Sequence record: OQ722176.1
Reading direction: 5' to 3' (one strand)
DNA length: 64,000 nt
Below, piece after piece: positions 8,296-51,920 of this stretch; positions within the stretch are counted from its first letter, which is position 1; the number at the start of each line of letters is the position of its first letter. Below the pieces are notes generated by a model that had not been told where the DNA came from, did no database searches, and saw nothing but the letters and a program-made list of their open reading frames with translations. The position numbers were made by a program, and so were the translations under genes.

Positions 8296-8302
8296 AAAGT
8301 GG

Positions 8303-8330: not shown

Positions 8331-8358
8331 GAACTCATCAACTGAAGAGAGAAACATT

Positions 8359-8750: not shown

Positions 8751-8957
8751 GCTTTAAAACCCGAGTAAAAATTTGGCACGCTGCACGAGCAGTTGATATG
8801 TTCTTGTTCAATCTAGCCGTAGCGATTTCGCGAAGCTTCTAACACAAGAGGGATGGTATGCCGTTTACGCTATCCCTTCACGATTTATCACCAATGGGAT
8901 TTGATGATTTCAGCAAAGCAGTAGATAAAATCAGGGAAGAATCTAAGGAAGAAATTT

Positions 8958-9179
8958 ATGAAAGTAGTATACGAAAATGCAACAAAGCACGAGAAAGGTC
9001 TTGTGGTTTACTTGAAGTTCAACGACGTAACGAACTACCGCGTCGGTAATGGTGCTGTGAAAAACGGTAAATCGTTTCAAGGCACAGTAAAGAAAGGTGA
9101 AAAGGTTTACGCAGATGAATTCGTAGTCGCTCACTCAAGTCAAACAGTCGAAGACGCTAACAAGCGCCAATGCAAATAG
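8958..9179 (+). CDS. Hypothetical protein
   Basis: AAGGA RBS. Confidence 0.65.
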   Translation: MKVVYENATKHEKGLVVYLKFNDVTNYRVGNGAVKNGKSFQGTVKKGEKVYADEFVVAHSSQTVEDANKRQCK

Positions 9180-9188
9180 GAGAATAAC

Positions 9189-26250: not shown

Positions 26251-26955
26251 ATGAAAAGAGCAATTCTAGTCGCGTTAGCAGTTGCAACACTTGCTGGTTG
26301 TAGTAAGCCTGCACCAACGCTTAAAGACAAAACTGACCCGACATTCAAAGTCGTTGAGAAAGTAGTCAATGCGAAAGAGCGAGAAATGATCAACTACTGG
26401 TTAGCAGACGCTGACGGTAGCAACTACTTGTACAAAGAAACATGGCGTGCTCTTGCAACTCGAAACAAATACGGTGAAAGTGCTGTACGTCGCGACGACA
26501 GTAAAATCCCGTTCTGTGACGTGATTGCAGCGATTGGTAAATCTGAAGAAGGCATTCGTAACACATACGAACGTACGTTCAACAATCAGTGGCGTTCTCA
26601 GTACGGGATTAGCTTGAATGAGCAATGTGGTTATGTTAAGCCAGAATCGCTCGACGAAGCAGCCGCGAGAATTGAAGAGCTTGAAATGAAAGCTGATCTG
26701 GTTCGTCGTGAAGCTGAAGCACAATCGACGCAAATCAAAACGCTCAATGATGTCAACGACGCGACGGTTGAATTACTTGACCCACACGAGTATGATTACT
26801 TAATCGAGTCTGCACGCGACTGTAACCGTGCTAAAACGAAATTGTTGACGCTTACCCAAGCTGGCAAGCCATTGACGCAAGCCGACGGCTCAGACGCACG
26901 TAAGCTAATCATTGAATGTAAAATGCATCAACTTGAAGTTGAACTTAATAAGTGA
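26251..26955 (+). CDS. Lipoprotein, paralogue 1
   Basis: Signal peptide with lipobox LAGC; four further Cys shared with 39593 gene. Confidence 0.8.
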   Translation: MKRAILVALAVATLAGCSKPAPTLKDKTDPTFKVVEKVVNAKEREMINYWLADADGSNYLYKETWRALATRNKYGESAVRRDDSKIPFCDVIAAIGKSEEGIRNTYERTFNNQWRSQYGISLNEQCGYVKPESLDEAAARIEELEMKADLVRREAEAQSTQIKTLNDVNDATVELLDPHEYDYLIESARDCNRAKTKLLTLTQAGKPLTQADGSDARKLIIECKMHQLEVELNK

Positions 26956-27828: not shown

Positions 27829-28335
27829 ATGCCAACACCTACAACTGGTGCTATTTCAATTGGTACCGTGCGTGATTATTTCAGCAAAACCGGCGCTGCT
27901 TCGCTGTCTCAGTATTATCGAGGTGGTGGCATCGTTCCGAACATTACTGAAAATAACCACGTCCCTACATCAGGCGCGATAAGTTTAGCTAACTTGCGTG
28001 GCGTATATCGTCTTTCATCACGCAGTACAACGTATTCAACAACACGTTCTACAACGTATTCAACGTCGAATTCAACGTCGAGAACAACGTCGAGAACAAC
28101 CACGTATCAATCAACACGTTCTACGACTTACACCACGACGTACTTGACATCACATACGACATCGGTTACAAAAGGTAGTTACACGACGACATACAATACG
28201 TCTAGAAGTACAACTAGAAACACATCGTATGACACAACGAGACCTACGAGTTATACTACAACGTGGACAACGACGTATAATACCAGTCGTTCAACTGCAT
28301 ATAATACAACACGTACAACACAAGTTCCCGTTTAG
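27829..28335 (+). CDS. Probable virion protein with Thr/Ser-rich tetrapeptide-repeat tail
   Basis: N-terminal PTTGAISI...LSQYYRGG...VPTSGAISLANLRG motif of phage virion/fibre proteins; C-terminal ~105 aa of xTT(Y/R)-type repeats; late promoter. Confidence 0.8.
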   Translation: MPTPTTGAISIGTVRDYFSKTGAASLSQYYRGGGIVPNITENNHVPTSGAISLANLRGVYRLSSRSTTYSTTRSTTYSTSNSTSRTTSRTTTYQSTRSTTYTTTYLTSHTTSVTKGSYTTTYNTSRSTTRNTSYDTTRPTSYTTTWTTTYNTSRSTAYNTTRTTQVPV

Positions 28336-28347: not shown

Positions 28348-28569
28348 ATGAGTTATAATGAAGAGCTAGAGGCGCGTGTTTCGAAACTCGAAGACGCGAA
28401 TAAACGCCTAGAAAAGATTATTGAAAATTTAGTTGAGTCTATGACTGCTAATAGTGAAGCTATCATCGATCACATTGCCTCACTTGAGAGTGAGCGTGAT
28501 ATGATTTTGCAGTCATATGATGATAGCCTTAGTGAGATAGTGGAAAAGTATGAACCCAAACAACAATGA
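28348..28569 (+). CDS. Small acidic coiled-coil protein
   Basis: Heptad pattern; overlaps next gene. Confidence 0.7.
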   Translation: MSYNEELEARVSKLEDANKRLEKIIENLVESMTANSEAIIDHIASLESERDMILQSYDDSLSEIVEKYEPKQQ

Positions 28570-29407
28570 AATGACGGGTTTCAATAATATGAGTCGCATA
28601 GGGACGCTTAAACTGCGTCACTGTGCAGACAATGTTCGTGCCATGTGTATGGACATTGTCAGTTTATTGAACTCTAACAACATCCCTTGCAATTTCGACA
28701 TCAATCACAATGACGGCGGCAACATCGGTGTTCATGAATGGGTGTCTCAAATCAGTTTCATTCACCTGAAATACATGAACGATGATTTCCAGCGGAAAAT
28801 ATTCGAACATGCCTACCAAAATCCGTCTGACTACATTCACGACTACTTTCGAGAGTTCGACCACGCTGACAAATATAAACTATCATCAAAGCCTAGATTT
28901 CTGAAATATGATAACGTTGTGTTTCTGTGTGGGACAAATGTATTAGAAATTGCAGTTGATTTTGACAAGCTAGATTTGGTATTTGAACAATACCCCGACG
29001 CTGTTATTAAGCCGCACCCGATTACGTCTGTGTATTACATGAATATGCTCAAGACTCGATACGGTTCGAAGAAAGTGCTATCCAATAAAATCTCAGGTAT
29101 AGATGTATTGAAATCAGCAAAGCGAGTTTGGTTACCAACTACGTCTGAATTCTGGTTTAGTGCCTTAATGTATGACAAAGAAATCGACTTCATTGATTCC
29201 GAAAAGTTTGTTGGTACATACACAGCGTTTGTGAAAACAGTGTGGGACATTGCAGAACGTACCGGCGAAGACCACAAGACGATTGTAAATCGAATCATAT
29301 CGTCACCGGTGTCAGGTCTGTACGGCAGCGTTGAAGATGTTGAATTCAACTATGAGCTTTATCGCGATACGATACTAAAACTCGGGGGTAATTTCGATAA
29401 TGTATGA
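28550..29407 (+). CDS. KpsS/KpsC-like (capsule polysaccharide biosynthesis) GT-B transferase
   Basis: DKYK then VIKPHP motif, then ..S....ALMYDK.I; layout of CMP-Kdo-type transferases. Confidence 0.6.
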   Translation: MNPNNNEMTGFNNMSRIGTLKLRHCADNVRAMCMDIVSLLNSNNIPCNFDINHNDGGNIGVHEWVSQISFIHLKYMNDDFQRKIFEHAYQNPSDYIHDYFREFDHADKYKLSSKPRFLKYDNVVFLCGTNVLEIAVDFDKLDLVFEQYPDAVIKPHPITSVYYMNMLKTRYGSKKVLSNKISGIDVLKSAKRVWLPTTSEFWFSALMYDKEIDFIDSEKFVGTYTAFVKTVWDIAERTGEDHKTIVNRIISSPVSGLYGSVEDVEFNYELYRDTILKLGGNFDNV

Positions 29408-30032
29408 TTACGTAATTTACACATCGATCAGTGACAAGAGTCAGTTGAATCAACTGGCTTTATTCGTAGGGTCCTTCATAGAAACGCACAAAAAAGGTCG
29501 AGTTGTTTGCATTACCGATCTTGAACTCGACTTTGATATGCCACGTCTGACGTTCGAGAGAGAACTACCTGACGAGTATGTGTATATCTCTGTGGATAAC
29601 TTTTTCATGGACAAGACATACGGCGTCGCTAGTTTCATTGATGATGGTCGTTGGTATTGTGCATGGCAGCCCGGTGACATTGATGATTTTGTCGTGAAAC
29701 GAAATGGCGAGCGAGAAGGTTTAATCAATCCTAATGTCTGCATAGGCAACTACAATATTTCAAAGTACGGCGACCTAGAAGCGTATTATCGATCTATTGA
29801 TTTGGTTAAAGAATGTGTGAGCATCAATACCAAAGACTTCAAGCCCGACGAAGAGAACAAGCGAAACAGCATGTACACGTTAGTATTCCCGTGGGAAATT
29901 TACTTTCATGTCATGATGATGTATAGTCAGTTCATCGACGAAGATTACATCGAGCGAGTTATGGCAAATTGCAATAAGTTTGTGCATTCAATCTACTATC
30001 GACAATCCGGGGTACTTCGTGACAAACTATGA
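29400..30032 (+). CDS. Hypothetical protein, possible GT-A-fold sugar transferase
   Basis: YVIYT...L..GSF...VVCITD...YISVDNFF resembles a GT8-like N-terminus and DxD region; weak. Confidence 0.4.
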   Translation: MYDYVIYTSISDKSQLNQLALFVGSFIETHKKGRVVCITDLELDFDMPRLTFERELPDEYVYISVDNFFMDKTYGVASFIDDGRWYCAWQPGDIDDFVVKRNGEREGLINPNVCIGNYNISKYGDLEAYYRSIDLVKECVSINTKDFKPDEENKRNSMYTLVFPWEIYFHVMMMYSQFIDEDYIERVMANCNKFVHSIYYRQSGVLRDKL

Positions 30033-30708
30033 TGAAATCATACTTGTTTCGGGGTTAGATAGCTTAGTTCTATATGAATTTCTTGATAGAAAACCCCATC
30101 CTGTTTATTTCAAATGGGGATTTTCTATTGATGAACTCGAAATAGCAAAACTACCACCCGAAACAACGATCATTGAAATGCCTGAACTTCTGCACATTCA
30201 GCATGATCCGTACGAGTTCAAGACTCCGAGAAATCCAGATTTGATTGGTCGCAACACAATGATGTTCAACGCAGTCTTTCATGCGTTTAGACCGTCTGTG
30301 ATTTATCGTGGTACACTGAAAGGCGATGACTTTTACTATGATGCGACAATTGAACACTCAGACGAAATCGCTGGTATGTGGTCTAAGTTGCTTGGTCGAG
30401 AGTGCAGAATAGAACAGCCGTTTATAACCAAGACGAAACGTGAGATCATGCAACTCGCATGTGAATATGAGATTGATGCAAACACGTTGCAACATTGCTA
30501 TAATAGAGACAATAATTGTGGTCGCTGTAGTAAATGTGTTGATGCACATGTTAGTTCAATGTTCACCGATAACCCAGCCATCGACCGACTTACTGAAATT
30601 GTGAATGATTGTGGCATGTCGTCGATGGCTAATCATATGTTTGGTGATAGTACGGTTGACAATATCAAGGAATTTTTGAATGAATATAATCGAACGAACA
30701 GCCGATAA
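30019..30708 (+). CDS. QueC-like PP-loop ATP pyrophosphatase
   Basis: ILVSGLDS PP-loop; TKREIM; C-terminal C-x5-CGRCSKC zinc site; probable GTG start 30019. Confidence 0.7.
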   Translation: MTNYDEIILVSGLDSLVLYEFLDRKPHPVYFKWGFSIDELEIAKLPPETTIIEMPELLHIQHDPYEFKTPRNPDLIGRNTMMFNAVFHAFRPSVIYRGTLKGDDFYYDATIEHSDEIAGMWSKLLGRECRIEQPFITKTKREIMQLACEYEIDANTLQHCYNRDNNCGRCSKCVDAHVSSMFTDNPAIDRLTEIVNDCGMSSMANHMFGDSTVDNIKEFLNEYNRTNSR

Positions 30709-31573
30709 GTTTAAGCATAGTTATCGTGAAGATGTTCAAGGTGCTCAATGGTACTTTGGAAGTAGAACACATGGGTTTTATCTTTATGGGATTGACTCGT
30801 TGGTTGAGAAAGTTAGCGAGTATGATTTCATTGAAATTAAGCATGTACCTGAAGGCACATTTGTCAAACAGGGTGAATCTGCGGTAACTGTGACCATTCA
30901 AGACAGAAGCAAGTTACAATACGGCAATATGATCGAAACATTGTTGTACAATGAATTGTGGTATTCAAGTACAGTCGGGACTATATTGCATCATTGTCGT
31001 GATGTTCTAGAGAATAACGATTTTGGTATTGGATCAGCTTATGCTCAAATCGGTCGTGCTAGTTCGACTCAAGAACAAAGTGATAAAGCTCGTGACATGT
31101 TCTCGCAAATATTCTATGCTTCGTCTGGTGATAAATCACCGGTAGCCATGCATAGTGACATATTAATAAATGGCGAAGAATATTGCATAGATAACTATCG
31201 AGGAATTATGATTGACACGTTTGATAAACAAGCGTGTATCGAATTGATCAAAAAGAAGAACTTTCGCGGTACTGTAATGGTTGATTCTCAGCCAATTATC
31301 GAGACCATTGATCAGGTTCTAGCAGAAACCGAATGCTTTGTCGCTCAAGCTGAAAGCGTGTCACTAGATGAGTGGATTTCGATTGTCGAACATTATCGCG
31401 GCTGCAAACGAGTTTTCTTCGGGATTGGTAGTTTTGCATTTAGCAACATTTCACGAGACACATACGGTTTGATTTACAAAGTTTGTGCTGTGAAGCGCGA
31501 CGATCAATGGCATGCGGTGTCAAAACAAACTCCTGGTAAACAGACATCATCGGGATTTAAAAATATAGCCTAA
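30680..31573 (+). CDS. Divergent miniature NAMPT/NAPRT-family (type II) phosphoribosyltransferase
   Basis: Colinear motifs with NadV at 35911: TADKFKHS, PEG, IETLLYNELWYSSTVGT, AMHS, IDTFD, VDS, FGIG...RDT...K...SK. Confidence 0.75.
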   Translation: MNIIERTADKFKHSYREDVQGAQWYFGSRTHGFYLYGIDSLVEKVSEYDFIEIKHVPEGTFVKQGESAVTVTIQDRSKLQYGNMIETLLYNELWYSSTVGTILHHCRDVLENNDFGIGSAYAQIGRASSTQEQSDKARDMFSQIFYASSGDKSPVAMHSDILINGEEYCIDNYRGIMIDTFDKQACIELIKKKNFRGTVMVDSQPIIETIDQVLAETECFVAQAESVSLDEWISIVEHYRGCKRVFFGIGSFAFSNISRDTYGLIYKVCAVKRDDQWHAVSKQTPGKQTSSGFKNIA

Positions 31574-31575
31574 TT

Positions 31576-32565
31576 ATGAAATATTGCATATCACCATTTA
31601 TATCGCCGTCTATTACACCAGACGGTTTCAAAATATGTTCAATGCCCGGTCAGAAAGTGTACCCTGATATTTCATTCTGGAATAGTGATGAAGTCATTAA
31701 AATACGTGAGCAGATAATTGCAGGTGAAATACCAGAGTCATGTCGTACATGTAGAAGTATGAGGGACGGTCTTGTTACATCATCCGTGAAGCCGACCGAG
31801 ACTATCATTGATTTGAATTTCGAAGCGTTGTACATTGCTCGTTCTAACAAGTGTGAATATGCTTGTGAAATGTGCAGTTCTTCTATTTCTCATAGCTATG
31901 ATAAGAAGTACAATGATGGTAAATTGGGTATGATTGAAAATGACTTTGATGTTATCCCATATCTCGGCAAAACGAAAATGGTTGCCATATCTGGGGGAAA
32001 CCCTGTCATTGACAAAAAGATTGCAGAGATACTTGAGAATCTTGACCCTGAAATGGTTCAGCATTTCATTATCACTTCTAATGGTACGGTATTCCCGGAT
32101 AGATTTCTTAACGCGATCAAGCGTTTGAAATGTGATGTGACGTTGATTTTCTCAATGGATGGCCCGAAAGAGTTCAACGAGGAAGTTAGATTTGGTGCAA
32201 AGCAAGAACGAATTTACCGAACAATCAATAAGGTTCTAGATTCAATTGAAGACATCCCGAATCTACACTTGGCAGTTGAGTATACCATGACTAATAAATC
32301 CATTCACCATTTTGTTGATTTATACGATGAAATGTTGTTTGAGATAAATCCAACTCATTTGAAAAATGGGAAAGTCAATATCATTGCTAATATGTGTACG
32401 TTCCCACATCATCTGAGCGTGACTACTGTTCCTAAGAGCGTAATTGAGGACATACTTCATGTTCAATTGCCATATCTTAGAAAACAGCCGTCGATTCTTT
32501 CAGATCAGTTTATTCATGGTTACGAAAAATTCTTGAGTGAATTGAGTCGAAGCGTGATTATATAA
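31576..32565 (+). CDS. Radical SAM protein with N-terminal twitch/SPASM-like Cys domain, 1
   Basis: C.SPF...IC...WNS...IR...CRTC then SNKCEYACEMC; GGNP, TSNGT, SMDG. Confidence 0.85.
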   Translation: MKYCISPFISPSITPDGFKICSMPGQKVYPDISFWNSDEVIKIREQIIAGEIPESCRTCRSMRDGLVTSSVKPTETIIDLNFEALYIARSNKCEYACEMCSSSISHSYDKKYNDGKLGMIENDFDVIPYLGKTKMVAISGGNPVIDKKIAEILENLDPEMVQHFIITSNGTVFPDRFLNAIKRLKCDVTLIFSMDGPKEFNEEVRFGAKQERIYRTINKVLDSIEDIPNLHLAVEYTMTNKSIHHFVDLYDEMLFEINPTHLKNGKVNIIANMCTFPHHLSVTTVPKSVIEDILHVQLPYLRKQPSILSDQFIHGYEKFLSELSRSVII

Positions 32566-33682
32566 TCAAGTCATACGACTTCACTTGTTCGTAAAATTCA
32601 GGTGAAGTCGTCTTCAAATCAGTTTTTGACTTTCGGTCAATTCGATTGTTCAGAACAAAGAATTCTGAGTTGAACTTACATTCACTATGTTCTAGATTCA
32701 GGCATTCATTGACAAATTTGAATGGTCTAGACAAGTCCTCTCTATCCAGCCCGATATACTTCTCTTGCAATTTCTTGAATCTTTTCACTAGAATATTTTT
32801 GTATGAATCAGGTATATTGTAGATTGAGTATGGGTTTTCTGGCTCACCGACAACGTTCACCGACAAACGAACGCGATCCCCATCATACGTCTCGTAGAAA
32901 TCCGAAACGAATGTTTCTAGATGTTCGAGTAATACATTCGATACCGTAGCTGTAATGACTACATCAAAGTGCTTGCTCATGATCTCGATGTTAGCTTTAG
33001 CTTGTTCTATGTCGGAAAAAATGCGTATGTAGTCTTGGCTTTTTCTCAATCCGTCAATTGAAACGAATATAGTCGATGCATTTGCATCTTTGAGCGAATC
33101 AATCAAACTCGAACCATCAGCAAGAGTAAGACTTGAACCATTTGTGAATATATGAACCGGTGCGCTAATCTCACCGACATTTCTAAGAACTTCGGGTCCA
33201 TTAGACGCTCTAGTAATTTCACCACCTAGAATTGTCAATGAAGACAACCCTTTGCTTACTGTGTTAATCGTTGTACTCAGGTCGTTGAATCGAGTACTAG
33301 AGTCTTCTTCGTTAAAGAATCTCGCCTTCAAGTCGGATAATTTGCTGTAGCAGTATCGACATGCTTGATTGCATTCATTGCTAGGGAATACCAATAGCCA
33401 TTTAACTGAATCTTCGGGCATGATTGCCGATACTGGAACATCATATTCGGTAAGTCGTGCAGGGTCGTTGTCGGTTATGCATTTCTGGCAAGCTGCCGAT
33501 AGCTTGCTCATATCGTGATTTAGCATAGCTTCACGATATGCCACCATCTTCTCATCGTTCCATGCGTCTGCTAGTGTCGTCTCATCAGTGAACCATTCAT
33601 AATCAGCCGAGCAGCAGAATGAAATCTGGTTGTTGGCGCGTGTTAATAGTTGCTTGAACGGCATATAACATAGTGGTTTCAT
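32558..33682 (-). CDS. Radical SAM protein with N-terminal twitch/SPASM-like Cys domain, 2
   Basis: C.MPF...FCC...WND...YR...CQKC then SNECNQACRYC; GGE, TNGS, SIDG...YIR. Confidence 0.85.
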   Translation of the reverse strand: MKPLCYMPFKQLLTRANNQISFCCSADYEWFTDETTLADAWNDEKMVAYREAMLNHDMSKLSAACQKCITDNDPARLTEYDVPVSAIMPEDSVKWLLVFPSNECNQACRYCYSKLSDLKARFFNEEDSSTRFNDLSTTINTVSKGLSSLTILGGEITRASNGPEVLRNVGEISAPVHIFTNGSSLTLADGSSLIDSLKDANASTIFVSIDGLRKSQDYIRIFSDIEQAKANIEIMSKHFDVVITATVSNVLLEHLETFVSDFYETYDGDRVRLSVNVVGEPENPYSIYNIPDSYKNILVKRFKKLQEKYIGLDREDLSRPFKFVNECLNLEHSECKFNSEFFVLNNRIDRKSKTDLKTTSPEFYEQVKSYDLII

Positions 33683-33692: not shown

Positions 33693-34268
33693 TTAGTTAA
33701 AAATGCTACTTGTATATATAGCGTACTTCAATGCATTCACGTGATCTGATTCGCGGTCTACGTGAACACATTGAATATCCTTGAATGCATCTTTGATTTC
33801 TTGGATATTGTCTAGTGAATCGTCGATGAAGTATTTCACATCATGTAATTCCCGCAATTTCTCGACGTATTTTGCCTTTGAGTCGAAATATTCAATCGAA
33901 ATGACTTCGCTGATCATGCGCGGGAACAGTGCGTTTAGATTGTGAACTCGATTCGTCCACGCTGTTCGACTCATGCTGAACTTGGTTAGGGCAATGACGT
34001 TATACCTATCCGAAAGCGCACGTAACGACTCGTAAGCGTCTTCGTATGCTGGTATGTACTTTGCACACTCATGTTCGTTATATGCCCCTATGAGCTTGCC
34101 AAGCTGCATTTCGCTGACGTTCATAAATAAAGAGCGTGCGTCGCTATCTGTTTTCGAGCCATTCATATTCAGATTATCGATCATGCCTAGTTGCATCATG
34201 AAGAACGGCAAGTTGGCTTTCCAATTAAGCAGAACACCGTCTACATCTATGATGATTGTCTTTTTCAT
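33693..34268 (-). CDS. 30.2: HAD-family phosphatase, T4 gp30.2 homologue
   Basis: IIIDVDGVLLNW, NR..NLNALFP...SEV, YFIDD match T4 gp30.2. Confidence 0.85.
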   Translation of the reverse strand: MKKTIIIDVDGVLLNWKANLPFFMMQLGMIDNLNMNGSKTDSDARSLFMNVSEMQLGKLIGAYNEHECAKYIPAYEDAYESLRALSDRYNVIALTKFSMSRTAWTNRVHNLNALFPRMISEVISIEYFDSKAKYVEKLRELHDVKYFIDDSLDNIQEIKDAFKDIQCVHVDRESDHVNALKYAIYTSSIFN

Positions 34269-34307
34269 TACAACCTCGAAAATTTTTAAATTTTTTGAAA
34301 AAAAGTA

Positions 34308-34335
34308 TTGACAGTTCGTTTTGTTCATGTAATAC
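34308..34335 (+). promoter_or_regulatory. Sigma70-type promoter in divergent intergenic region
   Basis: TTGACA-16-TAATAC with A/T-tract upstream. Confidence 0.6.
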
Positions 34336-34651: not shown

Positions 34652-34667
34652 TTGAAAGGGGTGTTTG

Positions 34668-35843
34668 ATGGTTCGTATAATCGCTGACATCCCGGGTACG
34701 AACGTCGGTGATGCTATCATCGCGTTCGCACCGTTGATGAAATTTGCACATACTCTGCGAAATAACAACAAAGAGTTTGAAATCTTAATACCGATTAACT
34801 CGTATACTTTTCGAGGCGAATTACTCCCTCTTATAGACTATATGGTAAGTCTTCATGAGTTGGGTGAATCTGTCAAGGTAGTTGATATTTGGAAGATTGA
34901 CGAAATCGGTGACGTTGACTTGTATGTGCAGTATAATATTGCAAACGGGTGCATGGCTTACAAAAGCAGTCGAGAAAATATTAAAGCGAAGACGAAGATC
35001 ACAAGCTTCTTGAGCGACGAACTGCCGATAAATTATGAATATTTTGATCGAGTTATTAACACGTCGCATTATAACAGACTTCAATTCCCGATATGGTTCA
35101 ATTTCAATGAGATTAATCGCATTATTCTATCTGATTATTTTGGTATAGAATGTGATGAAAAATCATATCTTCTTGATTTGAATTGGGGGTTTGATGGTCG
35201 CCCGAATTACCGAGAAATCGAAAAGCGATTTATCTTTCACGTGTGTGATGATCCAACGTCGGCGTTGAGGTGGACTAACGATGAGTATATCGAATTCATT
35301 CGAGAAGTTAACTCTCATATGCACAATTTGCCTAAATTGACATTCATCATTCACAATAATGAAGAATCGGTCAAGCAAATTGTCGATTCGATTGACAACG
35401 ATGTTGAATACATTGAAGGATCGTTGAAAGAGATCGCCGAATACATCAATCAGAAGGCATCTATCGTGATAACTCACTCGACGGGTATCATGCACATTGC
35501 AGCAGCATTGATGTGTTCAACCACTGAGTTGTCGAAATCACAGAGCTATTGGCACGGTATGCATTGGTGTCCACCGTGTGGTGTGAAAAAGCACTTTATA
35601 ATCGAGCCTCATTGTTACATATTCAGCAGCGTTGTTGATATTGACATAAAAAAAGCGGCTGGTGTTTTTCATAACTGGTTGATTAAACGGGGTCACTGTC
35701 CCGTCGAAACTGCTATGTCAGCGCATAAAGAGTTGCATAGCAATTTTAAAGCATTGAAAGAACGTCTCACTCCTGAAGAAATATCATCTATGATATGGAG
35801 CGCGGCTCATAAGTCAATGACAGTGAATGAGTTTAAATTTTAA
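34668..35843 (+). CDS. GT9 (heptosyltransferase-like) glycosyltransferase
   Basis: NVGDAII..PL, RW..E, SLKEIA..I..ASIVITHSTGIMHIAAAL. Confidence 0.75.
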   Translation: MVRIIADIPGTNVGDAIIAFAPLMKFAHTLRNNNKEFEILIPINSYTFRGELLPLIDYMVSLHELGESVKVVDIWKIDEIGDVDLYVQYNIANGCMAYKSSRENIKAKTKITSFLSDELPINYEYFDRVINTSHYNRLQFPIWFNFNEINRIILSDYFGIECDEKSYLLDLNWGFDGRPNYREIEKRFIFHVCDDPTSALRWTNDEYIEFIREVNSHMHNLPKLTFIIHNNEESVKQIVDSIDNDVEYIEGSLKEIAEYINQKASIVITHSTGIMHIAAALMCSTTELSKSQSYWHGMHWCPPCGVKKHFIIEPHCYIFSSVVDIDIKKAAGVFHNWLIKRGHCPVETAMSAHKELHSNFKALKERLTPEEISSMIWSAAHKSMTVNEFKF

Positions 35844-35910: not shown

Positions 35911-37404
35911 ATGCTAAATCTTACTCAAAATATCGCAATCGCAACTGACAGCTACAAAGTTTCACACTGGTCTCAATTCCCTCGTGGTCTAGAGTACAGC
36001 CAATATTATGTTGAAAGCCGGGGTGGCAAGTTCGACAAAATTATGGTCGATGGTATGGCATACATGTGTCGTATTCTCGAAAAAGGTGTTTCAATGAACG
36101 ATGTCAAGCGTGCGAAACGTCTGTTCAAAAAGCACTTCGGTTCAGAAGTCTTCAACGATAAGGGTTGGGACATCATCGTTAACGAACTAAAAGGCAAGCT
36201 GCCAATTAAGATTCGTGCGGTAAAAGAAGGTACTGTAGTACCAGTTAAACACCCTATCTTGACGATTGAAAACACAGATCCACGATTCGGCTGGCTACCT
36301 GGCTATCTTGAAACGTTTATCTTGCGTGCTATTTGGTACCCAACAACTGTAGCAACAATCTCGTTTGAAGTTAAGAAAATCATTCGCCAGTTCATGAACA
36401 TTACGGTTGATGATGAGCTTATCCCTCAAATTGAGCCATTCAAACTTCACGACTTCGGTTCACGTGGTGTATCAAGTGGCGAATCAGCAGCTATTGGCGG
36501 CTCTGCTCACTTGAAAAACTTCTTGGGAACTGACACTGTAGAAGCGTTGATTGCAGTTGAAGAACTATACGCTGAAGACGTTGAAGATTTCATTGCGGGA
36601 TTCTCTATCCCTGCACGTGAACACTCAACAACTACAATCTACAAAGAAGCAGGTGAAGACCTTGCGTTCTTGAACTCTATCGAGCAATGGGGTGCCGGTC
36701 TATACGCTTGCGTAATGGACAGCTATGACTACGAAGCAGCAATGAATCGTGTGTCAACTGGTCGCTTTAAAGAGTTAATCATCAGCAAAGGCGGTACTTT
36801 CGTTGCTCGTCCTGACTCTGGTGTGCCTGTAGATGTCGTAATGAAAGGTCTTGAGATTCTTGGTAAGAACGTTGGCTACACAGTCAACAGCAAAGGTTAC
36901 AAAGTTCTACACCCAAGTTTCCGCATCATTCAAGGCGACGGCGTGAACATCGAAGAAATTCGTCGAATCTTGTCTTACATGGAAAGTAAAGGCTGGTCAG
37001 CAGAAAACATTGCATTCGGTATGGGTGGTGGTTTGCTTCAACAACTAGACCGTGATACTCAACGTTTCGCAATGAAAATGAGTGCTGCGATCATCAATGG
37101 TGAATACGTTAGCGTGTTCAAAATGCCAAAGACTGATCCGACTAAAGCATCAAAAGCGGGATTCTTGGACTTGATTGCAGTTGATGCAGAAAATCCAAAC
37201 CCAGCAGCGCGTGGTTACGTGACGTTCTCTTCTGAAGATTACGAAAATCGCGTACATCCGCAAAGCGTGATGCAAACAATCTTCGAAAATGGTGTAACAG
37301 TTGCTGACTTCTCACTTGAAGAAGCGCGTAAACTGTCTGACGTACAAGCAAATTTCCTCAACGAAGGTGAATGGAAAATTGCTAAAAAGATTGTAACTGC
37401 GTAA
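35911..37404 (+). CDS. nadV: Nicotinamide phosphoribosyltransferase
   Basis: TDSYKVSH, HDFGSRG, IPAREHS, ARPDSG, IIQGDG, FGMGGGLLQ..DRDT. Confidence 0.95.
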   Translation: MLNLTQNIAIATDSYKVSHWSQFPRGLEYSQYYVESRGGKFDKIMVDGMAYMCRILEKGVSMNDVKRAKRLFKKHFGSEVFNDKGWDIIVNELKGKLPIKIRAVKEGTVVPVKHPILTIENTDPRFGWLPGYLETFILRAIWYPTTVATISFEVKKIIRQFMNITVDDELIPQIEPFKLHDFGSRGVSSGESAAIGGSAHLKNFLGTDTVEALIAVEELYAEDVEDFIAGFSIPAREHSTTTIYKEAGEDLAFLNSIEQWGAGLYACVMDSYDYEAAMNRVSTGRFKELIISKGGTFVARPDSGVPVDVVMKGLEILGKNVGYTVNSKGYKVLHPSFRIIQGDGVNIEEIRRILSYMESKGWSAENIAFGMGGGLLQQLDRDTQRFAMKMSAAIINGEYVSVFKMPKTDPTKASKAGFLDLIAVDAENPNPAARGYVTFSSEDYENRVHPQSVMQTIFENGVTVADFSLEEARKLSDVQANFLNEGEWKIAKKIVTA

Positions 37405-37437: not shown

Positions 37438-37495
37438 AGGGTTGCTTCGGCAGCCCTTTTTTTGTATTATAGCTACATCGAAACGACATCGACTA
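37438..37495 (+). promoter_or_regulatory. Fused terminator and early promoter
   Basis: AGGGTTGC-TTCG-GCAGCCCT plus T run; -35 TTGCTT (37442), -10 TATTAT (37465); 56/58 identical to 40334. Confidence 0.9.
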
Positions 37496-39592: not shown

Positions 39593-40312
39593 ATGAAAAA
39601 ATTAATCGCAATCGCAGCCCTAGCAGCATCAGTAGTTCTAACTGGTTGTACTGACACTATCGACAATGCAGCAACTGATCAGCTTAAAGCTGCTCTACCA
39701 GTGATGTCTCAAACTGAAAAAGACATGCTAAACGTGTTCGCAGCACCAAGCTTCTTGAGTCGCTACGACGATATGTACGCTAACGTAGTCAAACAGCGCG
39801 TACACTTCGGTCAGAAGCCCGTTCCGCGTGCAAATGAAGAAGTGCCTTTCTGTGATGTAATCGACTCTGTAATCGCAGCAGAGCGCGAACATCGTATGGC
39901 AGAGAAAGACTACAGTCTATCAGGTCAGTGGAAAATGAAGTACGGCATCACGCTTCTTGAACAGTGTAATCAAACTGACCGCGCACGAATCAACGCTCAG
40001 ATTGCAAAGGCACAAGCTGAAGCTGAAGCAGCGAAAGACCGTGTAGTCATCGAAGAACAAGAATTCAGCAAGAAAGAAATCAAAGCTGAAAAGATTCTTG
40101 AAGACACAGTTGTAATCAACGAAGACGTTCTTCTATCACCTGAGCTAGTTCGCGAACTGCGTGGTTCAGTATCAGACTGTAATCGTGCTAAAGTTCGATT
40201 GATGAGCGTAGTCGATGCTGGCGAGCAACTAACAACTAAGCACTATGACGAAGTTAAAGGTCTAGTTCTTCAGTGTGAAATGCTAAAGCTAGAAGTTGAA
40301 TTAAACAAATAA
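39593..40312 (+). CDS. Lipoprotein, paralogue 2
   Basis: Lipobox LTGC; PFCDVI, QW..YGI.L.EQC, DCNRAK, C....LEVELNK shared with 26251 gene. Confidence 0.8.
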   Translation: MKKLIAIAALAASVVLTGCTDTIDNAATDQLKAALPVMSQTEKDMLNVFAAPSFLSRYDDMYANVVKQRVHFGQKPVPRANEEVPFCDVIDSVIAAEREHRMAEKDYSLSGQWKMKYGITLLEQCNQTDRARINAQIAKAQAEAEAAKDRVVIEEQEFSKKEIKAEKILEDTVVINEDVLLSPELVRELRGSVSDCNRAKVRLMSVVDAGEQLTTKHYDEVKGLVLQCEMLKLEVELNK

Positions 40313-40740: not shown

Positions 40741-41793
40741 TTATTTCACCATTTTGATTTGAATCTGATTGTCCATGTATTTCATTTTCTTTTCAAATTC
40801 AACGTCGTATTCAGGTCTGTGTTCGTATTCAACTGATAGCATTTGCTTCAAGCATCTAAACAATTCAGCTTTGTAATACCCCTCTTCCATGCCCTTCATT
40901 TGCTCATACTGCGTTTTCATTGCAGCTTTGATGATCTTAGGATCCATGAACTTGATTGACATTTCACGAGGTGCTTTTACTGTACCGAAGTCAACAAACA
41001 CTTGAGCTTTTTCAGCAACTTGAATGAAGTCGTAAATCGTGTCATAACTCATTCGACTTAGAGTGTGGTGCATACAAACGTGCTTGCTGTGTTCTTTCAA
41101 TAGCGGCACATTAGCAAGCATCAAGTCGTGGTCGATATTCTGACGAATGTATTCGTTTCTTTCTTTGCCACCATCACATGAGATTGTGAATACCAAACGG
41201 TCTTTGTACTTTTTGCAGATTGCTAGAATTTTCTTAGCTAATGGCGTGTGAAGTACAGTCCCGTTGGTCAGAATGTAAACTTCAGCTTTTGTTTCTTCCA
41301 TGACTTCAGTTAGAACTTCGACTGTTCGCTTGTCCATGAATGGTTCGCCGCCATACAGAACAACAGTTTCAACACCTTTCGGTATACTGAAATCAAGCTG
41401 TTTGTAATCGTATGTGTCTTCGATGTCGTACAAATCCATGTATGATTTGCTGTTCTTGCCGTAGCACATTCGACACGCTAGGTTACACTTATTCGACATC
41501 AAGATTTGAATCGTTCTTGGGTGTTCTTCGAGTGCTTCATATTCGAAATACTTCTGGTCAGACAGTTCACCGTAGCTCATGCATTCTTTGCAGTACTCTG
41601 GCAGCGTGTCGTAATCAAACATCTTAGCGCGGTGCTCGTTGATGATGTCACTATGCCACCAATCTTCAACGTTTGGAAATGGCTCACTTAATTGTGAGCA
41701 GCAGATATGATAGCCGTCTGGCTTCGCGTCGCGTGTGTTAAAGGGAGAGCCACATAGTGGCTTTTTCCCGTCTTTGAATCCAAATTTGTCCAT
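40741..41793 (-). CDS. Radical SAM protein with N-terminal twitch/SPASM-like Cys domain, 3
   Basis: CGSPF...ICC...WWHS...HR...CKEC then SNKCNLACRMC; GGEP, TNGT, SCDG...YIR. Confidence 0.85.
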   Translation of the reverse strand: MDKFGFKDGKKPLCGSPFNTRDAKPDGYHICCSQLSEPFPNVEDWWHSDIINEHRAKMFDYDTLPEYCKECMSYGELSDQKYFEYEALEEHPRTIQILMSNKCNLACRMCYGKNSKSYMDLYDIEDTYDYKQLDFSIPKGVETVVLYGGEPFMDKRTVEVLTEVMEETKAEVYILTNGTVLHTPLAKKILAICKKYKDRLVFTISCDGGKERNEYIRQNIDHDLMLANVPLLKEHSKHVCMHHTLSRMSYDTIYDFIQVAEKAQVFVDFGTVKAPREMSIKFMDPKIIKAAMKTQYEQMKGMEEGYYKAELFRCLKQMLSVEYEHRPEYDVEFEKKMKYMDNQIQIKMVK

Positions 41794-43845: not shown

Positions 43846-46074
43846 TTGATGCTTGTAGTGAAGTCTTCTGGCATTACAGAAGAATTTGAAGAAAGTAAAT
43901 TGATGCGCGTTTTAGCAGACGCTTGTAAAAACACCACAGTCGATCCGCATCAACTACTTGACCGCGTTAAAGCTCAACTTAGCGACGGTATGACGAGCAA
44001 AGACATTCAAAAGGCAGCGATCAAAATCGCTGCCGATAGCATTTCAGTAGACGAGCCAGACTATCAATATGTTTCGGCTCGTCTTGCTATGTATGGTCTT
44101 CGCAAAGATGTATATGGTCAGTTCGACCCTATTCCATTCAAACAACTTATCGAGAAAAACACAGCTATCGGCGTGTATGACCCTGAAATTCTTCAGAAAT
44201 GGTCTGACGACGAGCTAGAATATATCGAATCTCTTATTCAACACGAGCGAGATTTTGAATTCGCATACGCTGGCGTAATGCAGTTCAAAGAAAAGTACTT
44301 GTGTAAAAACCGCGGGACTGGTGCAATCTACGAAACACCGCAATACGCTTATATGCTAATTGCTATGTGTCTACACCAAGAAGAGAAATTCGACAGAATC
44401 AAACACGTTGTTGATTTCTACAACGCTGTTTCAACTCAGAAACTTTCACTACCAACACCGATCATGGCAGGCGTTCGTACCCCGACACGTCAATTTAGCT
44501 CGTGTGTTAAAATCGAATCGGGTGACTCTCTGCGTTCGATTAACAAAGTATCTGAAGCAATCGTTGATTACATCAGCAAACGCGCAGGTATTGGTGTGAA
44601 TGGTGGTGCTATTCGTGCTGAGGGTTCAGTCGTTCGAGCAGGTGAAATTCGTCACACTGGCGTAATTCCATTCTGGAAACACTTTCAGACTGCGGTTAAA
44701 TCGTGTTCTCAAGGTGGCGTACGTGGCGGTGCTGCGACGTTGACTTACCCGATTTGGCACTTAGAAGTTGAAAAACTGCTTGTACTGAAGAACAACAAAG
44801 GTGTTGAAGAAAACCGTATTCGTCATCTAGACTACAGCGTTTCAATCAGTCGATTGATGATGCAACGTCTTGTTGATAACGACTACATCACACTGTTCAG
44901 CCCTGACGAACGTCACGGTGCTCTATATGGTGAATATCACACAAACCCAGAACAGTTCGAAAAGCTGTATCTTGAGCTTGAAGCTGACCCGAAAGTTCGC
45001 AAGAAACGCATCAAAGCAACTGAGCTATTCAGTATGTTTGGTCAAGAGCGTGCAGGTACTGGTCGTATCTACCCGATCTTTGTTGACAACTTGAATGCAC
45101 AGTCGCCATACATCGAAGCGATCAAGCAATCGAACTTGTGCATGGAAATCGCGCTTCCGACGTACCCGCTTGGTACAGCAGACGAAGAGATCGCGCTTTG
45201 TACACTTGCAGCATACAACTTAGGTGCAATCGAATCACCAAGTGAATTCGCGAAGCTTGCTCCAATCGTTATGCGTGCGCTTGACAATCTACTTGATTAC
45301 CAAGATTATCCAGTAGAAGCCGCTGAGAAAGCAAAATTCAGACGTGCATTGGGTGTTGGTATCACTAACTTTGCGTATTTCTTAGCTAAGAACTTTGTTG
45401 GGTATGATGCTTCAGCTAAATATCTTGTGCATGAATGGATGGAAGCAATGTCTTACTACAACATTCAAGCATCAATGCATCTAGCTAAAGAACGTGGCGC
45501 GAATAAGTGGCATCGTAAGACACGATGGGCGAAAGGTCAATTGCCAATTGACTGGTACAACAAAAATGTTGATAAGCTTGTCAAACCGAATTATAATCTA
45601 GACTGGGAAGCACTTCGCGCTGACGTTATTCGTTACGGTATGCGAAATGATACAACTTCCGCTTTCATGCCATGTGAAAGTAGTTCTCAGATTAGTAACA
45701 GCACGAACGGCATTGAGCCGCCACGTGGTCTAGTGTCAACTAAGCAGTCAAAAGACGGGGTGTTCAACCAAGTTGTGCCTGAAGTTGATTTGCTGAAAGA
45801 CGAATACGGTCTTGCGTGGAAAGTGTGTGAACGAGATAACTTCGGTTATCTAACGCTAGTTGCAATCATGCAGAAGTTTGTTGATCAAAGCATTTCAGCA
45901 AACCAATACTATGATCCATCAAAGTTCCCTAATGGTAAGATCCCGATGGAACGTATTTTCGAAGAACTGGCGTTCTGTAGCCATTACGGTATCAAAACTC
46001 TTTACTATTCTAACACTCGTGACGGTGCTGACGGCACTGAAGACGGGGAAGACTGTGACGGTTGCAAGGTTTAA
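43846..46074 (+). CDS. nrdA: Class Ia ribonucleotide reductase alpha subunit
   Basis: ATP cone; PTPIMAG, QFSSCV, QGGVRGG, SNLCMEI, KTLYY, C-terminal CDGC; late-like AATAAATA at 43812. Confidence 0.97.
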   Translation: MMLVVKSSGITEEFEESKLMRVLADACKNTTVDPHQLLDRVKAQLSDGMTSKDIQKAAIKIAADSISVDEPDYQYVSARLAMYGLRKDVYGQFDPIPFKQLIEKNTAIGVYDPEILQKWSDDELEYIESLIQHERDFEFAYAGVMQFKEKYLCKNRGTGAIYETPQYAYMLIAMCLHQEEKFDRIKHVVDFYNAVSTQKLSLPTPIMAGVRTPTRQFSSCVKIESGDSLRSINKVSEAIVDYISKRAGIGVNGGAIRAEGSVVRAGEIRHTGVIPFWKHFQTAVKSCSQGGVRGGAATLTYPIWHLEVEKLLVLKNNKGVEENRIRHLDYSVSISRLMMQRLVDNDYITLFSPDERHGALYGEYHTNPEQFEKLYLELEADPKVRKKRIKATELFSMFGQERAGTGRIYPIFVDNLNAQSPYIEAIKQSNLCMEIALPTYPLGTADEEIALCTLAAYNLGAIESPSEFAKLAPIVMRALDNLLDYQDYPVEAAEKAKFRRALGVGITNFAYFLAKNFVGYDASAKYLVHEWMEAMSYYNIQASMHLAKERGANKWHRKTRWAKGQLPIDWYNKNVDKLVKPNYNLDWEALRADVIRYGMRNDTTSAFMPCESSSQISNSTNGIEPPRGLVSTKQSKDGVFNQVVPEVDLLKDEYGLAWKVCERDNFGYLTLVAIMQKFVDQSISANQYYDPSKFPNGKIPMERIFEELAFCSHYGIKTLYYSNTRDGADGTEDGEDCDGCKV

Positions 46075-46083
46075 GGTAGATAG

Positions 46084-47208
46084 ATGTCTAAAACGATTTT
46101 CAATAAAAATAAGGTTGACCATCTTGGTCAACCTCTTTTCTTGGGCGAAGACCCAAACATTTCTCGATTCGAAACTGTTAAGCACGGTGTATTCGAACAG
46201 CTTACTGAAAAACAACTTTCTTTCTTCTGGCGACCAGAAGAAGTCGATTTGACTCTTGACTCTCAAGAATTTGATCGAATGCCTGAGCACTGGAAACACG
46301 TGTTCACGCAAAACCTAAAGTATCAATCACTGCTAGACTCTGTGCAAGGTCGTGCGCCTAATATCGCGTTCTTGCCTATCTGTAGTGACAACTCGCTTGA
46401 AAACTGGATCACGACGTGGGACTTCAGTGAAACCATTCACAGTCGTTCTTACACGCACATCATGCGTAACTTGTATTCAAACCCAAGTGCGGTGTTTGAC
46501 GAAATCGTACTCGACAAGTCAATCATGGCGCGTGCTGAAGCAGTTACTGAGCATTATGACAAACTGATTTCTGAAACGCAAAAGCTTAACCAGCTTAAAA
46601 CGATGAATCTTGACGAAGCTCACGTTCTTATGCAAGAAAGTGCAGTTAAAGAAGCACTTTACTTGTGTATGCACGCAGTAAACGCACTTGAAGCAATTCG
46701 TTTCTATGTTTCATTCGCATGTACTTTCAACTTTGCAGAGCAAGGTATTATGGAAGGCAACGCGAAAGTAATGAAACTGATTGCTCGTGATGAACAGCTT
46801 CACCTAAAAGGTACTCAAGCACTTATCACCATCTGGCAAAACTACAAAGATGACCCAGAAATGGCAGAAATTTCTCTTCGACTTCAATCAGAAGCTGAAA
46901 AGATTTTCATGCAAGTTGTTGAGCAAGAGAAAGAGTGGGCACACTCACTGTTTGCTCAAGGCACAGTCCCGGGTCTTAATGCTCAGATTCTAAGTGAATA
47001 CGTTGAATACCTAGCTGATAGTCGTATGCGCTCGGTTGGTTTGAATAGCCCATACCCTCGTCGTAAGCACCCATTGCCATGGATTCGCAAGTGGCTAAAT
47101 AGTGATTCAGTACAAGTGGCAGCGCAAGAAGCTGAACTTAGTTCGTACCTAGTTGGTCAAATTGATTCAACTGTACGCCCTGAATTCCTAAAAACGTTAG
47201 AGGTGTAA
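46084..47208 (+). CDS. nrdB: Class Ia ribonucleotide reductase beta subunit
   Basis: FFWRPEEVD, DSVQGR, ETIHSRSY, EAIRFY.SF, IARDE.LH. Confidence 0.97.
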   Translation: MSKTIFNKNKVDHLGQPLFLGEDPNISRFETVKHGVFEQLTEKQLSFFWRPEEVDLTLDSQEFDRMPEHWKHVFTQNLKYQSLLDSVQGRAPNIAFLPICSDNSLENWITTWDFSETIHSRSYTHIMRNLYSNPSAVFDEIVLDKSIMARAEAVTEHYDKLISETQKLNQLKTMNLDEAHVLMQESAVKEALYLCMHAVNALEAIRFYVSFACTFNFAEQGIMEGNAKVMKLIARDEQLHLKGTQALITIWQNYKDDPEMAEISLRLQSEAEKIFMQVVEQEKEWAHSLFAQGTVPGLNAQILSEYVEYLADSRMRSVGLNSPYPRRKHPLPWIRKWLNSDSVQVAAQEAELSSYLVGQIDSTVRPEFLKTLEV

Positions 47209-51038: not shown

Positions 51039-51920
51039 ATGCAGGTAAAATGGACAGAAATGTTCTACAGCATTCAAGGCGAAGGCAAATACACTGGTCA
51101 CGCTAGTTTATTCTTTCGCTTCTGGGGCTGTAATCTTGAATGTCACGGCTTCGGTCAAGAAGATCCAACGAACAAAGATACATGGGTATTAGACTTCAAA
51201 GACTATGATCCGAAAGCTAACAACGTGAATTCAGTTGAAGAACTACCTGTATGGACTCGTGGTTGTGACTCTTCATACACGTGGGCTAAAAAGTATGCTC
51301 ATCTTGCTTCAAAGTCTGAAGTTTCAGACGTATGCGAAGCAATGCTTGACAAACTGCCTAATCGAGTATGGGGAGATATTCACTGGGTGATTACTGGCGG
51401 TGAGCCGTTGATGAATCAAGCACAGATCATCGAAATGATGAAGTACTTTGTTTCAATCGACAATTTCCCAAAGAACATCACAATTGAAACGAACGGCACG
51501 CAAAAGTTCAAGCCAAACTTCAGAGAACAGTGGGCGTTAATTAACTGGAATACGCTGCAATCAGTTACATTAAACTTCAGCGTATCAGCGAAGCTATTCA
51601 ATGTAACAGGCGAAGTTCCTGAAAAAGCAATAAAGCCTGAAGTTGTTAACGAGTATGCTCAAATCGGCAACGTCTGGCTAAAACCAGTTGTCGTAGATAC
51701 CGAAGCTTGTTGGGAAGAGCTTGACGCTGTGGTAGCACAGTTCAAAGCAAAACGCCGATTACATGACGTACCGGTTTATATTATGCCATGCGGCGCTACT
51801 CAAGAAGAGCAAGAGCAGCAAGGTTACATGGCTTCAATCGCAGGGAAAGCATTGGAGCGTGGTTACAACGTTTCTGTACGTGTTCACGTGTGGATTTGGG
51901 GTAACGCAGTGGGCACGTAA
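51039..51920 (+). CDS. queE: 7-carboxy-7-deazaguanine synthase (radical SAM QueE)
   Basis: EMFYSIQGEG..TG....F.R..GCNL.C-x40-CD..Y; ITGGEP; IETNGT; R.HV.IWG. Confidence 0.9.
   Translation: MQVKWTEMFYSIQGEGKYTGHASLFFRFWGCNLECHGFGQEDPTNKDTWVLDFKDYDPKANNVNSVEELPVWTRGCDSSYTWAKKYAHLASKSEVSDVCEAMLDKLPNRVWGDIHWVITGGEPLMNQAQIIEMMKYFVSIDNFPKNITIETNGTQKFKPNFREQWALINWNTLQSVTLNFSVSAKLFNVTGEVPEKAIKPEVVNEYAQIGNVWLKPVVVDTEACWEELDAVVAQFKAKRRLHDVPVYIMPCGATQEEQEQQGYMASIAGKALERGYNVSVRVHVWIWGNAVGT

Follow-up and report, generated by a model that had tools for sequence, protein, structure and literature searches.

A 64,000-nucleotide stretch of sequence record OQ722176.1 (the window) encodes a 297-aa NAMPT-like type II phosphoribosyltransferase (PRTase), here called mini-NAMPT (30680..31573, plus strand), which is rated as a new functional subfamily of the NAMPT fold within an undescribed phage module. 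Its partner in this module is a Cap9/QueC-like PP-loop ATPase, and it is tentatively proposed that mini-NAMPT could well be an active PRTase that depends on 5-phosphoribosyl-1-pyrophosphate (PRPP) and acts on a 7-deazaguanine-type base handled by that partner; we infer that the two proteins act on the same molecule. Mini-NAMPT very probably has a role other than that of NadV, which belongs to the nicotinamide adenine dinucleotide (NAD+) reconstitution pathway of KVP40-type phages. A full-text search combining QueC with (nicotinamide) phosphoribosyltransferase and phage found no published description of a QueC-like/NAMPT-like phage module.

Pairing of QueC-like and NAMPT-like genes

The QueC-like gene (30019..30708, plus strand), which was recognized by Pfam QueC, PADLOC QueC (E 6e-12) and PDB profile matches and encodes a Zn Cys4 motif, lies directly upstream of the mini-NAMPT gene and overlaps its start by 29 nt. 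This overlap is consistent with translational coupling of the two genes, and it bears out an earlier note on this DNA, which had placed the open reading frame (ORF) directly behind a QueC-like enzyme. More generally, consecutive genes of the module overlap stop-to-start by 1-35 nt.

Among seven lineages, a count that includes the sister lineage L016 and in which independent lineages are few, a QueC-like gene was found beside a NAMPT-like gene (directly upstream or one gene away) in six. The pair is present in three vibriophage sublineages, L007, L008-L010 (with two QueC-like genes), L011, L012 and L016 (with two QueC-like genes and three NAMPT-like copies). In an all-against-all BLAST comparison, the QueC-like and NAMPT-like genes were the only ones common to all contexts, and a search of 5.8 billion proteins with the QueC-like profile returned only members adjoining NAMPT-like genes. 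Canonical NAMPT controls had no QueC neighbour, the copies of Lacusarx and XacN1 being paired with NatV. The association between QueC-like and NAMPT-like genes is thus not a local accident. As to the question raised in the earlier note of whether homologues always adjoin both QueC-like and radical S-adenosylmethionine (SAM) genes, the former part holds in the six lineages, whereas radical SAM genes are frequent rather than universal neighbours.

When the QueC-like family profile was compared with PDB sequences, Cap9 (9nto_B) was the best match (E 3e-11), followed by the canonical QueC structures 2pg3 (4e-10) and 3bl5 (2e-8). The motifs of the family are xSGxDS, E41, GR[ND], [YF]x[DE], PFx4K and Cx6CxxCxxC; it keeps the Zn Cys4 site, the invariant Glu of Y/FxQ(x)5E, the Arg of RN (Cap9 R86) and PF(x)4K, and its aromatic-x-acid triplet matches Y115-x-D117 of Cap9, which holds the deazaguanine.

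Gene, fold and active site of mini-NAMPT

The ORF at 30680-31573 is a real, intact gene. It begins with ATG, preceded by an AAGGA Shine-Dalgarno sequence 8 nt 5' of the start, and it was found in all 35 Schizotequatrovirus-like records, as a single unbroken match in 34 of them and in two pieces in phi-pp2. A ratio of nonsynonymous to synonymous substitutions (dN/dS) of 0.13 against phage QD01 indicates purifying selection, and 59 columns are invariant across six mini-family sequences. Thus, neither frameshifted or decaying homologues nor the lack of a conserved neighbourhood, both of which the earlier note had named as signs that would speak against its proposal, were found: the vibriophage copies are unbroken with one exception, and the pairing with QueC-like genes recurs in six of seven lineages. 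The exceptional phi-pp2 copy (JN849462 133480-134371) is split in two and represented by a 210-aa fragment in BFVD, for which a frameshift or a sequencing error is possible. The window comes from Vibrio phage vB_VspM_VS2, a relative of KVP40: over the 9 kb around the gene, identity to this phage is 100%, and to KVP40-type (Schizotequatrovirus-like) jumbo myoviruses it is 80-93%. The KVP40 orthologue, KVP40.0259, is labelled 'hypothetical protein' and its sole flag is a match to Pfam PF04095, while in other phage records the gene has been auto-labelled nicotinate/nicotinamide phosphoribosyltransferase; no PADLOC model matched mini-NAMPT.

The homology of mini-NAMPT to NAMPT is far beyond chance. 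The Pfam NAPRTase model scored 30.8 bits against a gathering cutoff of 20.8, covering residues 175-290 only, and phrog_448, the phage NAMPT family, matched with E 9e-31. The NAMPT_N domain was not detected by Pfam, although hhalign does align the N-terminus: with the mini-clade profile against 39 full-length NAMPTs, the probability was 100% (E 4e-42) and residues 1-296 were collinear with residues 5-421 of NadV. That canonical, full-length NAMPT of 497 aa, a component of NAD+ reconstitution pathway 2 (NARP2), is encoded downstream (35911..37404, plus strand) and contains NAMPT_N and NAPRTase (E 1e-40 to 1e-47), as the earlier note had recognized. BLASTP between the two proteins of the window gave only a weak match (E 1e-6, first 110 residues); all six motif pairs that the note had drawn by eye between them were nevertheless reproduced by MAFFT and hhalign. 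The structure-based comparison it had called for points the same way. The AlphaFold2 (AF2) model of mini-NAMPT is of high predicted quality (predicted local distance difference test (pLDDT) 93.5, predicted template modelling (TM) score 0.89), and its best PDB matches by Foldseek were all NAMPT, with E about 1e-16 and a query TM-score (TMq) of 0.82-0.84; Namat, another phage enzyme of this fold, was also matched. Mini-NAMPT is about 200 residues shorter than NadV and lacks a ~40-residue internal stretch of domain A, the GTDT-motif loop, several barrel insertions and the last ~75 residues. Going by its model, mini-NAMPT is a structurally complete but minimised NAMPT-fold (type II) PRTase. Curated NCBIfam equivalog scores were not reached, the best being NF006629 with 66.5 bits against a cutoff of 405, and the NaPRT (PncB) equivalogs TIGR01513, NF009131 and NF006696 gave E 0.004-0.008 and ~15 bits where ~300-500 are required.

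A residue table was drawn up for the clade, whose proteins are only 26-50% identical, with mini-NAMPT numbered as in the window. The corresponding human NAMPT positions, which we assign by motif identity, agree with the residue lists in PMC12774641, PMC3665594 and PMC12143786. The residues kept are R29 (human R40), the phosphate-binding R126 (R196; K in one clade member), the catalytic phospho-histidine H158 (H247), D179/D182 of the D279 motif (D182 being D279), D202 (D313), R259-D260 (R392-D393, of which R392 binds phosphate) and the conserved lysines K267, K282 and K287; H158, D202, D182, R126 and R259 are invariant or nearly so throughout the clade. The nicotinamide pocket has fared differently. 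In NAMPT and Namat, nicotinamide is bound by stacking of F193 and Y18' on the pyridine ring, by a hydrogen bond from D219 and by R311 (PMC12774641, PMC3665594). In mini-NAMPT, F193 is replaced by Q123 (K, C or H in relatives), the segment with D219 is deleted, and R311, the Arg of RPDSG, is M200 and hydrophobic in the whole clade (M/I/L/V); the position of Y18' is F in the window protein and V or M in close relatives. This pattern suggests an enzyme that still binds PRPP and uses a His-dependent mechanism without recognizing nicotinamide. The view of the earlier note that the protein probably uses a different base or acceptor is thereby supported as regards the base, the pocket residues being replaced, deleted or variable beside conserved PRPP and phospho-His machinery. 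Its statement that the arginines of both FGSRG and RPDSG appear changed was right for RPDSG; FGSRG, which aligns with 'IGRASS', retains its Arg as R126.

These residues make it unlikely that mini-NAMPT is a further PRTase for nicotinamide. The same table bears on the view that it is no enzyme at all and serves as a base- or nucleotide-binding subunit, a sponge or a heterodimer partner of NadV, which, taken together with the ordinary-NAMPT alternative, appears very improbable. Such a role would suit a protein that lacks ~200 residues, among them the C-terminal segment and part of domain A, and the fact that NAMPT active sites are built across the dimer interface (PMC12774641). However, divergent as the clade is, the catalytic His and Asp and the phosphate-binding Arg and Lys residues do not vary within it, purifying selection acts on the gene (dN/dS 0.13), and most modules have no NadV nearby, while an ordinary NAMPT is contradicted by the loss of the nicotinamide pocket residues.

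The pocket is also relevant to a possible bypass in NAD+ synthesis, in which mini-NAMPT would phosphoribosylate nicotinate or another pyridine, the QueC-like protein would amidate nicotinate mononucleotide (NaMN) to nicotinamide mononucleotide (NMN), and NatV would adenylate NMN, providing a further NAD+ reconstitution route beside NadV/NatV. This is improbable. The protein family is indeed NAMPT/NAPRT, NadV and NatV are encoded nearby in vibriophages, and PP-loop relatives are able to amidate or thiolate pyridine carboxylates (NadE, and LarE, which lies within the PF06508 network). D219 specifies the amide in NAMPT (PMC12143786), and its loss is compatible with nicotinate; on the other hand, the pyridine-sandwiching F193 and Y18' are also lost or variable, and the partner keeps QueC/Cap9-type base-contact residues as well as a Zn Cys4 motif that is absent from LarE. 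In addition, a bypass leaves the radical SAM partners and the tail-fibre context unexplained, and no NatV was found close to the modules in those parts of L007, L008, L011 and L012 that were retrieved.

Proposed reaction and its acceptor

According to the proposal of 7-deazaguanine phosphoribosylation, the QueC-like partner would activate the carboxylate of 7-carboxy-7-deazaguanine (CDG) and then amidate it or ligate it to an amine, and mini-NAMPT would move ribose-5-phosphate from PRPP to N9 of the base to yield a 7-deazaguanine ribonucleotide; either step could come first. CDG would be supplied by the host Q pathway together with phage FolE, QueD and QueE. KVP40-type phages carry their own FolE/QueD/QueE/QueC/DpdA set elsewhere in the genome, with a core cluster for preQ0 (7-cyano-7-deazaguanine), and a canonical QueE-like radical SAM enzyme (CDG synthase; 51039..51920, plus strand; phrog_2076, E 1e-73) is a possible source of the base; KVP40.0284 has been listed as QueE (PMC8056088). 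As these phages encode FolE, QueD and QueE, the last within the window, CDG should be available in infected cells. The base may be either free, as in a nucleotide pathway like tubercidin or toyocamycin assembly, or already attached to a protein, for example a tail-fibre-like one. In the vibriophages, the product would probably be elaborated by radical SAM enzymes (twitch-type here and RlmN/Cfr-like elsewhere), HAD-like and glycosyltransferase-like (GT-like) proteins.

Two precedents give this chemistry its outline. Phosphoribosylation of CDG with PRPP has been demonstrated experimentally for TubE (PMC6112128), and Cap9 ligates 7-carboxy-7-deazaguanine to a protein N-terminus, leaving N9 free for 'subsequent addition of ribose' in the words of its discoverers. 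A free base would agree better with the precedent of TubE/ToyH, with the RlmN-like partner and with the bacterial homologue that stands alone; in favour of a protein-linked base are the affinity to Cap9, the tail-fibre setting, the peptide-maturase-like radical SAMs and the multiplicity of copies.

Several observations weigh against the phosphoribosylation of a 7-deazaguanine-type base. First, the substrate is deduced from gene neighbourhood and residue patterns only. Second, the PP-loop of the QueC-like proteins is xSGxDS, without the first Ser of SGGxDS, and most of these proteins have a hydrophobic residue in place of the Q of Y/FxQ(x)5E; therefore, the substrate of the QueC-like enzyme may differ from CDG. 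Third, the ribose-binding pair G353-D354 is A-E in mini-NAMPT and variable elsewhere (S or Q in some members). Moreover, the bacterial homologue in L006, the sole exception to the pairing, is solitary, with no QueC-like gene nearby. A canonical QueC and DpdA route is already present in the phage, which leaves the need for a second route unexplained, and a plain nucleotide pathway does not explain the siting of the module beside tail-fibre genes.

This siting is accommodated by a protein-directed version of the same chemistry, which differs in the acceptor: the QueC-like enzyme would ligate CDG or a similar base to an amine of a structural protein, and mini-NAMPT would then phosphoribosylate N9 of the base-tagged tail, so that the nucleotide is built on a tail-fibre-like protein. 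The alternative is credible, if on balance unlikely. Cap9 is the closest solved relative of the QueC-like partner, and both Cap9 and QatC modify their partners; canonical QueC, however, scores nearly as high as Cap9. The modules lie inside or beside genes for tail-fibre, tail-tip and internal virion proteins in L007, L008, L011, L012 and L016, where the adjoining genes encode Peptidase_S74 or tail-collar fibres, a tail-tip or internal virion protein, or a repeat protein of 3406 aa, but accessory genes often adjoin tail-fibre genes for unrelated reasons. In L007 and L012, the module is directly preceded by fibre-like proteins with SGxISM...LRG, and a vibriophage 168-aa protein has a related motif, although the SGxIS motif test is partly circular and the candidate substrates have no conserved N-terminal Gly motif. 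The vibriophage radical SAMs are twitch/SPASM-like and best resemble peptide maturases, L008 and L016 have the QueC-like and NAMPT-like genes in several copies, and the addition of ribose to N9 is what the Cap9 paper predicts; the solitary bacterial homologue, in turn, argues for a free metabolite. In its fullest form, a Cap9-like enzyme would amide-link CDG to a tail-fibre-like or other virion protein, mini-NAMPT would phosphoribosylate N9, and radical SAMs would tailor the product, a conversion of nucleobase to nucleotide on a viral protein that is rather doubtful. If true, it would yield a protein-linked 7-deazaguanosine monophosphate, i.e., the addition of ribose that was postulated, though not found, by those who discovered deazaguanylation.

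The likeness of the module to known systems is partial in each case. With NAMPT/NadV (NARP2), mini-NAMPT shares the type II PRTase fold, a collinear sequence, the catalytic His and Asp and the phosphate-binding Arg and Lys residues, whereas these enzymes are ~200 residues longer, have a detectable NAMPT_N, keep the nicotinamide pocket and have NatV as genomic partner. Namat (NARP1; PDB 9w5x/9w5w), which was the best PDB sequence match (E 3e-6), is likewise a phage NAMPT-fold enzyme with altered substrate use. Namat, however, keeps the nicotinamide pocket and has changed its donor via a selectivity clamp, working with the PRPS-like Adps (PMC12774641), whereas in mini-NAMPT the base pocket has changed; no PRPS-like (Adps) gene was found among the mini-NAMPT operon genes. 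A kinship with NARP3 was rejected, as NARP3 consists of PnuC and NadR. Cap9-Cap10 of type IV CBASS (cyclic oligonucleotide-based antiphage signalling system) and QatC-QatB similarly pair a compact QueC-family enzyme with a fold that normally acts at ribose C1' with a base. The partner of Cap9 is the TGT-like Cap10, whereas that of the QueC-like protein, in which the deazaguanine-contact residues are conserved, is a NAMPT-like PRTase; unlike the Cap9 systems, the module is phage-encoded, and any protein modification by it would be putative. No CD-NTase, effector, QatA or QatD was found near the module loci, the neighbours being NAMPT-like, radical SAM and tail genes. Finally, TubE and ToyH perform the chemistry proposed here for the module, PRPP-dependent phosphoribosylation of CDG or preQ0, in a pathway that also includes a QueE radical SAM and QueC, but they are type I PRTases (PF00156) of actinomycete clusters while mini-NAMPT is type II, and the analogy is purely functional, the biological settings being unrelated as well.

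Neighbouring genes, distribution and meaning

Only 3 nt 3' of mini-NAMPT lies the gene for a twitch-domain radical SAM enzyme (31576..32565, plus strand; Pfam Radical_SAM, N_Twi_rSAM with E 8e-33, phrog_14086), followed by that of a second twitch-domain paralogue in convergent orientation (32558..33682, minus strand; Pfam, PHROG and NCBIfam), both of which are conserved in L003 and L004. The two genes overlap by 8 nt, and with 40741-41793 (minus strand) they make up three paralogous phrog_14086 twitch radical SAM genes within 10 kb. The best curated matches of these window enzymes are N_Twi_rSAM, peptide-maturase or viperin/MoaA-like models. In L008 and L012, a gene for a CxxxCxxC RlmN/Cfr-like enzyme separates the QueC-like from the NAMPT-like genes, and such an enzyme is also present in L016. 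In the latter, an uncultured jumbo-phage contig, the stretch 2784-9218 is a continuous array of two QueC-like genes, one gene for an RlmN-like radical SAM enzyme and three copies of the NAMPT-like gene, one of which is split into ORFs of 123 and 307 aa; the array is bounded on one side by the 3406-aa RCC1/WD40 repeat protein and on the other by an M15 endolysin.

Outside the vibriophages, the module is found inside or beside tail modules in each of the five lineages named above for this setting. In L007 and L012, the fibre-like protein directly upstream of the module has a common N-terminal SGxISM...LRG domain (E 2e-5). In the window, a 168-aa Ser/Thr-rich fibre-like protein with tandem SGxIS[LM]xxLRG motifs (27829..28335, plus strand), identified from its sequence, is a candidate structural protein or substrate. 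Two N-terminal SGxIS[LI]...(R/Y)G motifs are followed there by RSTTYSTT-type Ser/Thr/Tyr-rich repeats; it is labelled 'cell wall mannoprotein' in QD01 and resembles a mucin-like, possibly modified fibre protein. SGxIS[LM]xxLRG is unique in the six-frame translation of the window, a partly circular test as the motif was derived from these proteins, and its kinship with the fibre domain of L007 and L012 is a lead only.

Upstream of the QueC-like gene, the vibriophage operon encodes a 285-aa protein with a weak GT-B-like fold and conserved KPHP...STSE (28550..29407, plus strand; AF2 pLDDT 78) and a 210-aa protein whose gene overlaps both neighbours (29400..30032, plus strand; phrog_30897, orthologues in L003 and L004), both of them confined to that operon. 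Foldseek matched the 285-aa model best to WbbB (8csd, E 1e-4, TMq 0.43) and then to other GT-B enzymes, whereas PDB sequence searches with the two proteins returned nothing and a homologue search with the 285-aa protein recovered vibriophage orthologues only. A 291-aa protein of L007 was considered as a homologue of either and rejected as not homologous, so the 285-aa and 210-aa proteins are lineage-specific and not core partners. Downstream of the radical SAM genes, a HAD-like protein related to T4 30.2 and a possible phosphatase (33693..34328, minus strand; weak Pfam Hydrolase, phrog_420, KVP40 annotation) is encoded beside the module in L003 and L004, and a GT9 (heptosyltransferase)-like protein is encoded at 34665..35843 (plus strand; Pfam Glyco_transf_9, 22.4 bits). 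The GT9-like gene lies between the 30.2-like gene and nadV in VS2 and QD01 and is absent there in KVP40, which indicates a lineage-specific insertion.

These proteins raise the alternative that the acceptor to which mini-NAMPT transfers PRPP-derived (phospho)ribose is a sugar, a lipid or a glycan, or that it supplies the GT-B-like, GT9-like and nucleotidyltransferase proteins with a ribosyl donor, the HAD protein removing the 5-phosphate. Bacterial glycans are known to be ribofuranosylated from PRPP and then dephosphorylated by a HAD enzyme, and the vibriophage locus has the weak GT-B-like, GT9-like and HAD-like proteins just described, an NTP_transf_3 protein in L004 and a Ser/Thr-rich protein upstream. 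Nevertheless, a glycan or sugar acceptor seems hardly probable, as the extra genes are limited to the vibriophage lineage and leave the universal QueC-like partner unexplained, and the HAD-like 30.2 protein is also present in T4, which has no such module.

Beyond NadV, a terminator-like hairpin was found at 37438-37457; apart from it, a promoter and terminator scan did no better than on shuffled sequence. The region of the QueC-like, mini-NAMPT, radical SAM and NadV genes is flanked by predicted lipoprotein paralogues at 26251-26955 and 39593-40312 (both plus strand; 30% identical, E 2e-25) with signal-peptide and Cys lipobox-like N-termini. The rest of the window (43846-47208, 49501-50787, 51039-51920, 58338-63074) carries genes for NrdA/NrdB, a topoisomerase II subunit, the QueE-like enzyme and long-tail-fibre distal subunits (minus strand), and a change in the sign of the GC skew near 58 kb coincides with the strand switch to the long-tail-fibre genes.

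The family is very rare: when 1.84 billion cluster representatives were scanned in full with HMMER, only three clusters with E < 1e-30 and six with E < 1e-10 were recovered. Mini forms (294-303 aa) come from the vibriophages, from L007, which is an unrelated phage contig, and from a single bacterial contig, L006; mid-length forms (386-404 aa) come from the uncultured phages L008-L012. The mini-family profile, run against IMG/VR, JGI metagenome contigs and GTDB genomes, returned KVP40 itself only, or nothing, and the mid-length profile gave at most one unrelated weak match in JGI metagenome contigs and GTDB genomes. Distant matches in the jumbo phages Lacusarx and XacN1 were rejected as clade members, since they are ordinary NadV-NatV pairs. 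The sole non-phage member, L006 10001-10912 (303 aa), is solitary in a high-GC bacterial contig whose neighbouring genes encode a transposase, a group II intron reverse transcriptase, Y_phosphatase3 and pterin-binding proteins. In a quick IQ-TREE maximum-likelihood search, nine NAMPT-likes formed one clade on a long stem (SH-like approximate likelihood ratio test (SH-aLRT) 99), with mini forms nested within mid-length forms. The window NadV was placed among canonical NAMPTs, far from this separate deep clade, which rules out a recent duplication of NadV as the origin of mini-NAMPT; the label 'paralogue' in the earlier note thus applies in the broad sense, not as a recent NadV copy.

As mini-NAMPT very probably does not serve NAD salvage, auto-annotations of such genes as 'nicotinamide phosphoribosyl transferase' should not be counted as NAD-salvage capacity. 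The analysis defines a compact, recurrent phage module of a Cap9/QueC-like and a NAMPT-like protein, with or without radical SAM enzymes. That QueC-family enzymes attach 7-deazaguanine to proteins in bacterial immunity is a recent discovery, and a step that uses the free N9 is still missing. A PRTase genomically locked to a Cap9-like enzyme is a testable candidate for this N9 step or for a new phage route to 7-deazapurine nucleotides; either outcome would widen the known substrate range of the NAMPT fold and would matter for phage-host conflict and for the modification of phage DNA or virions.

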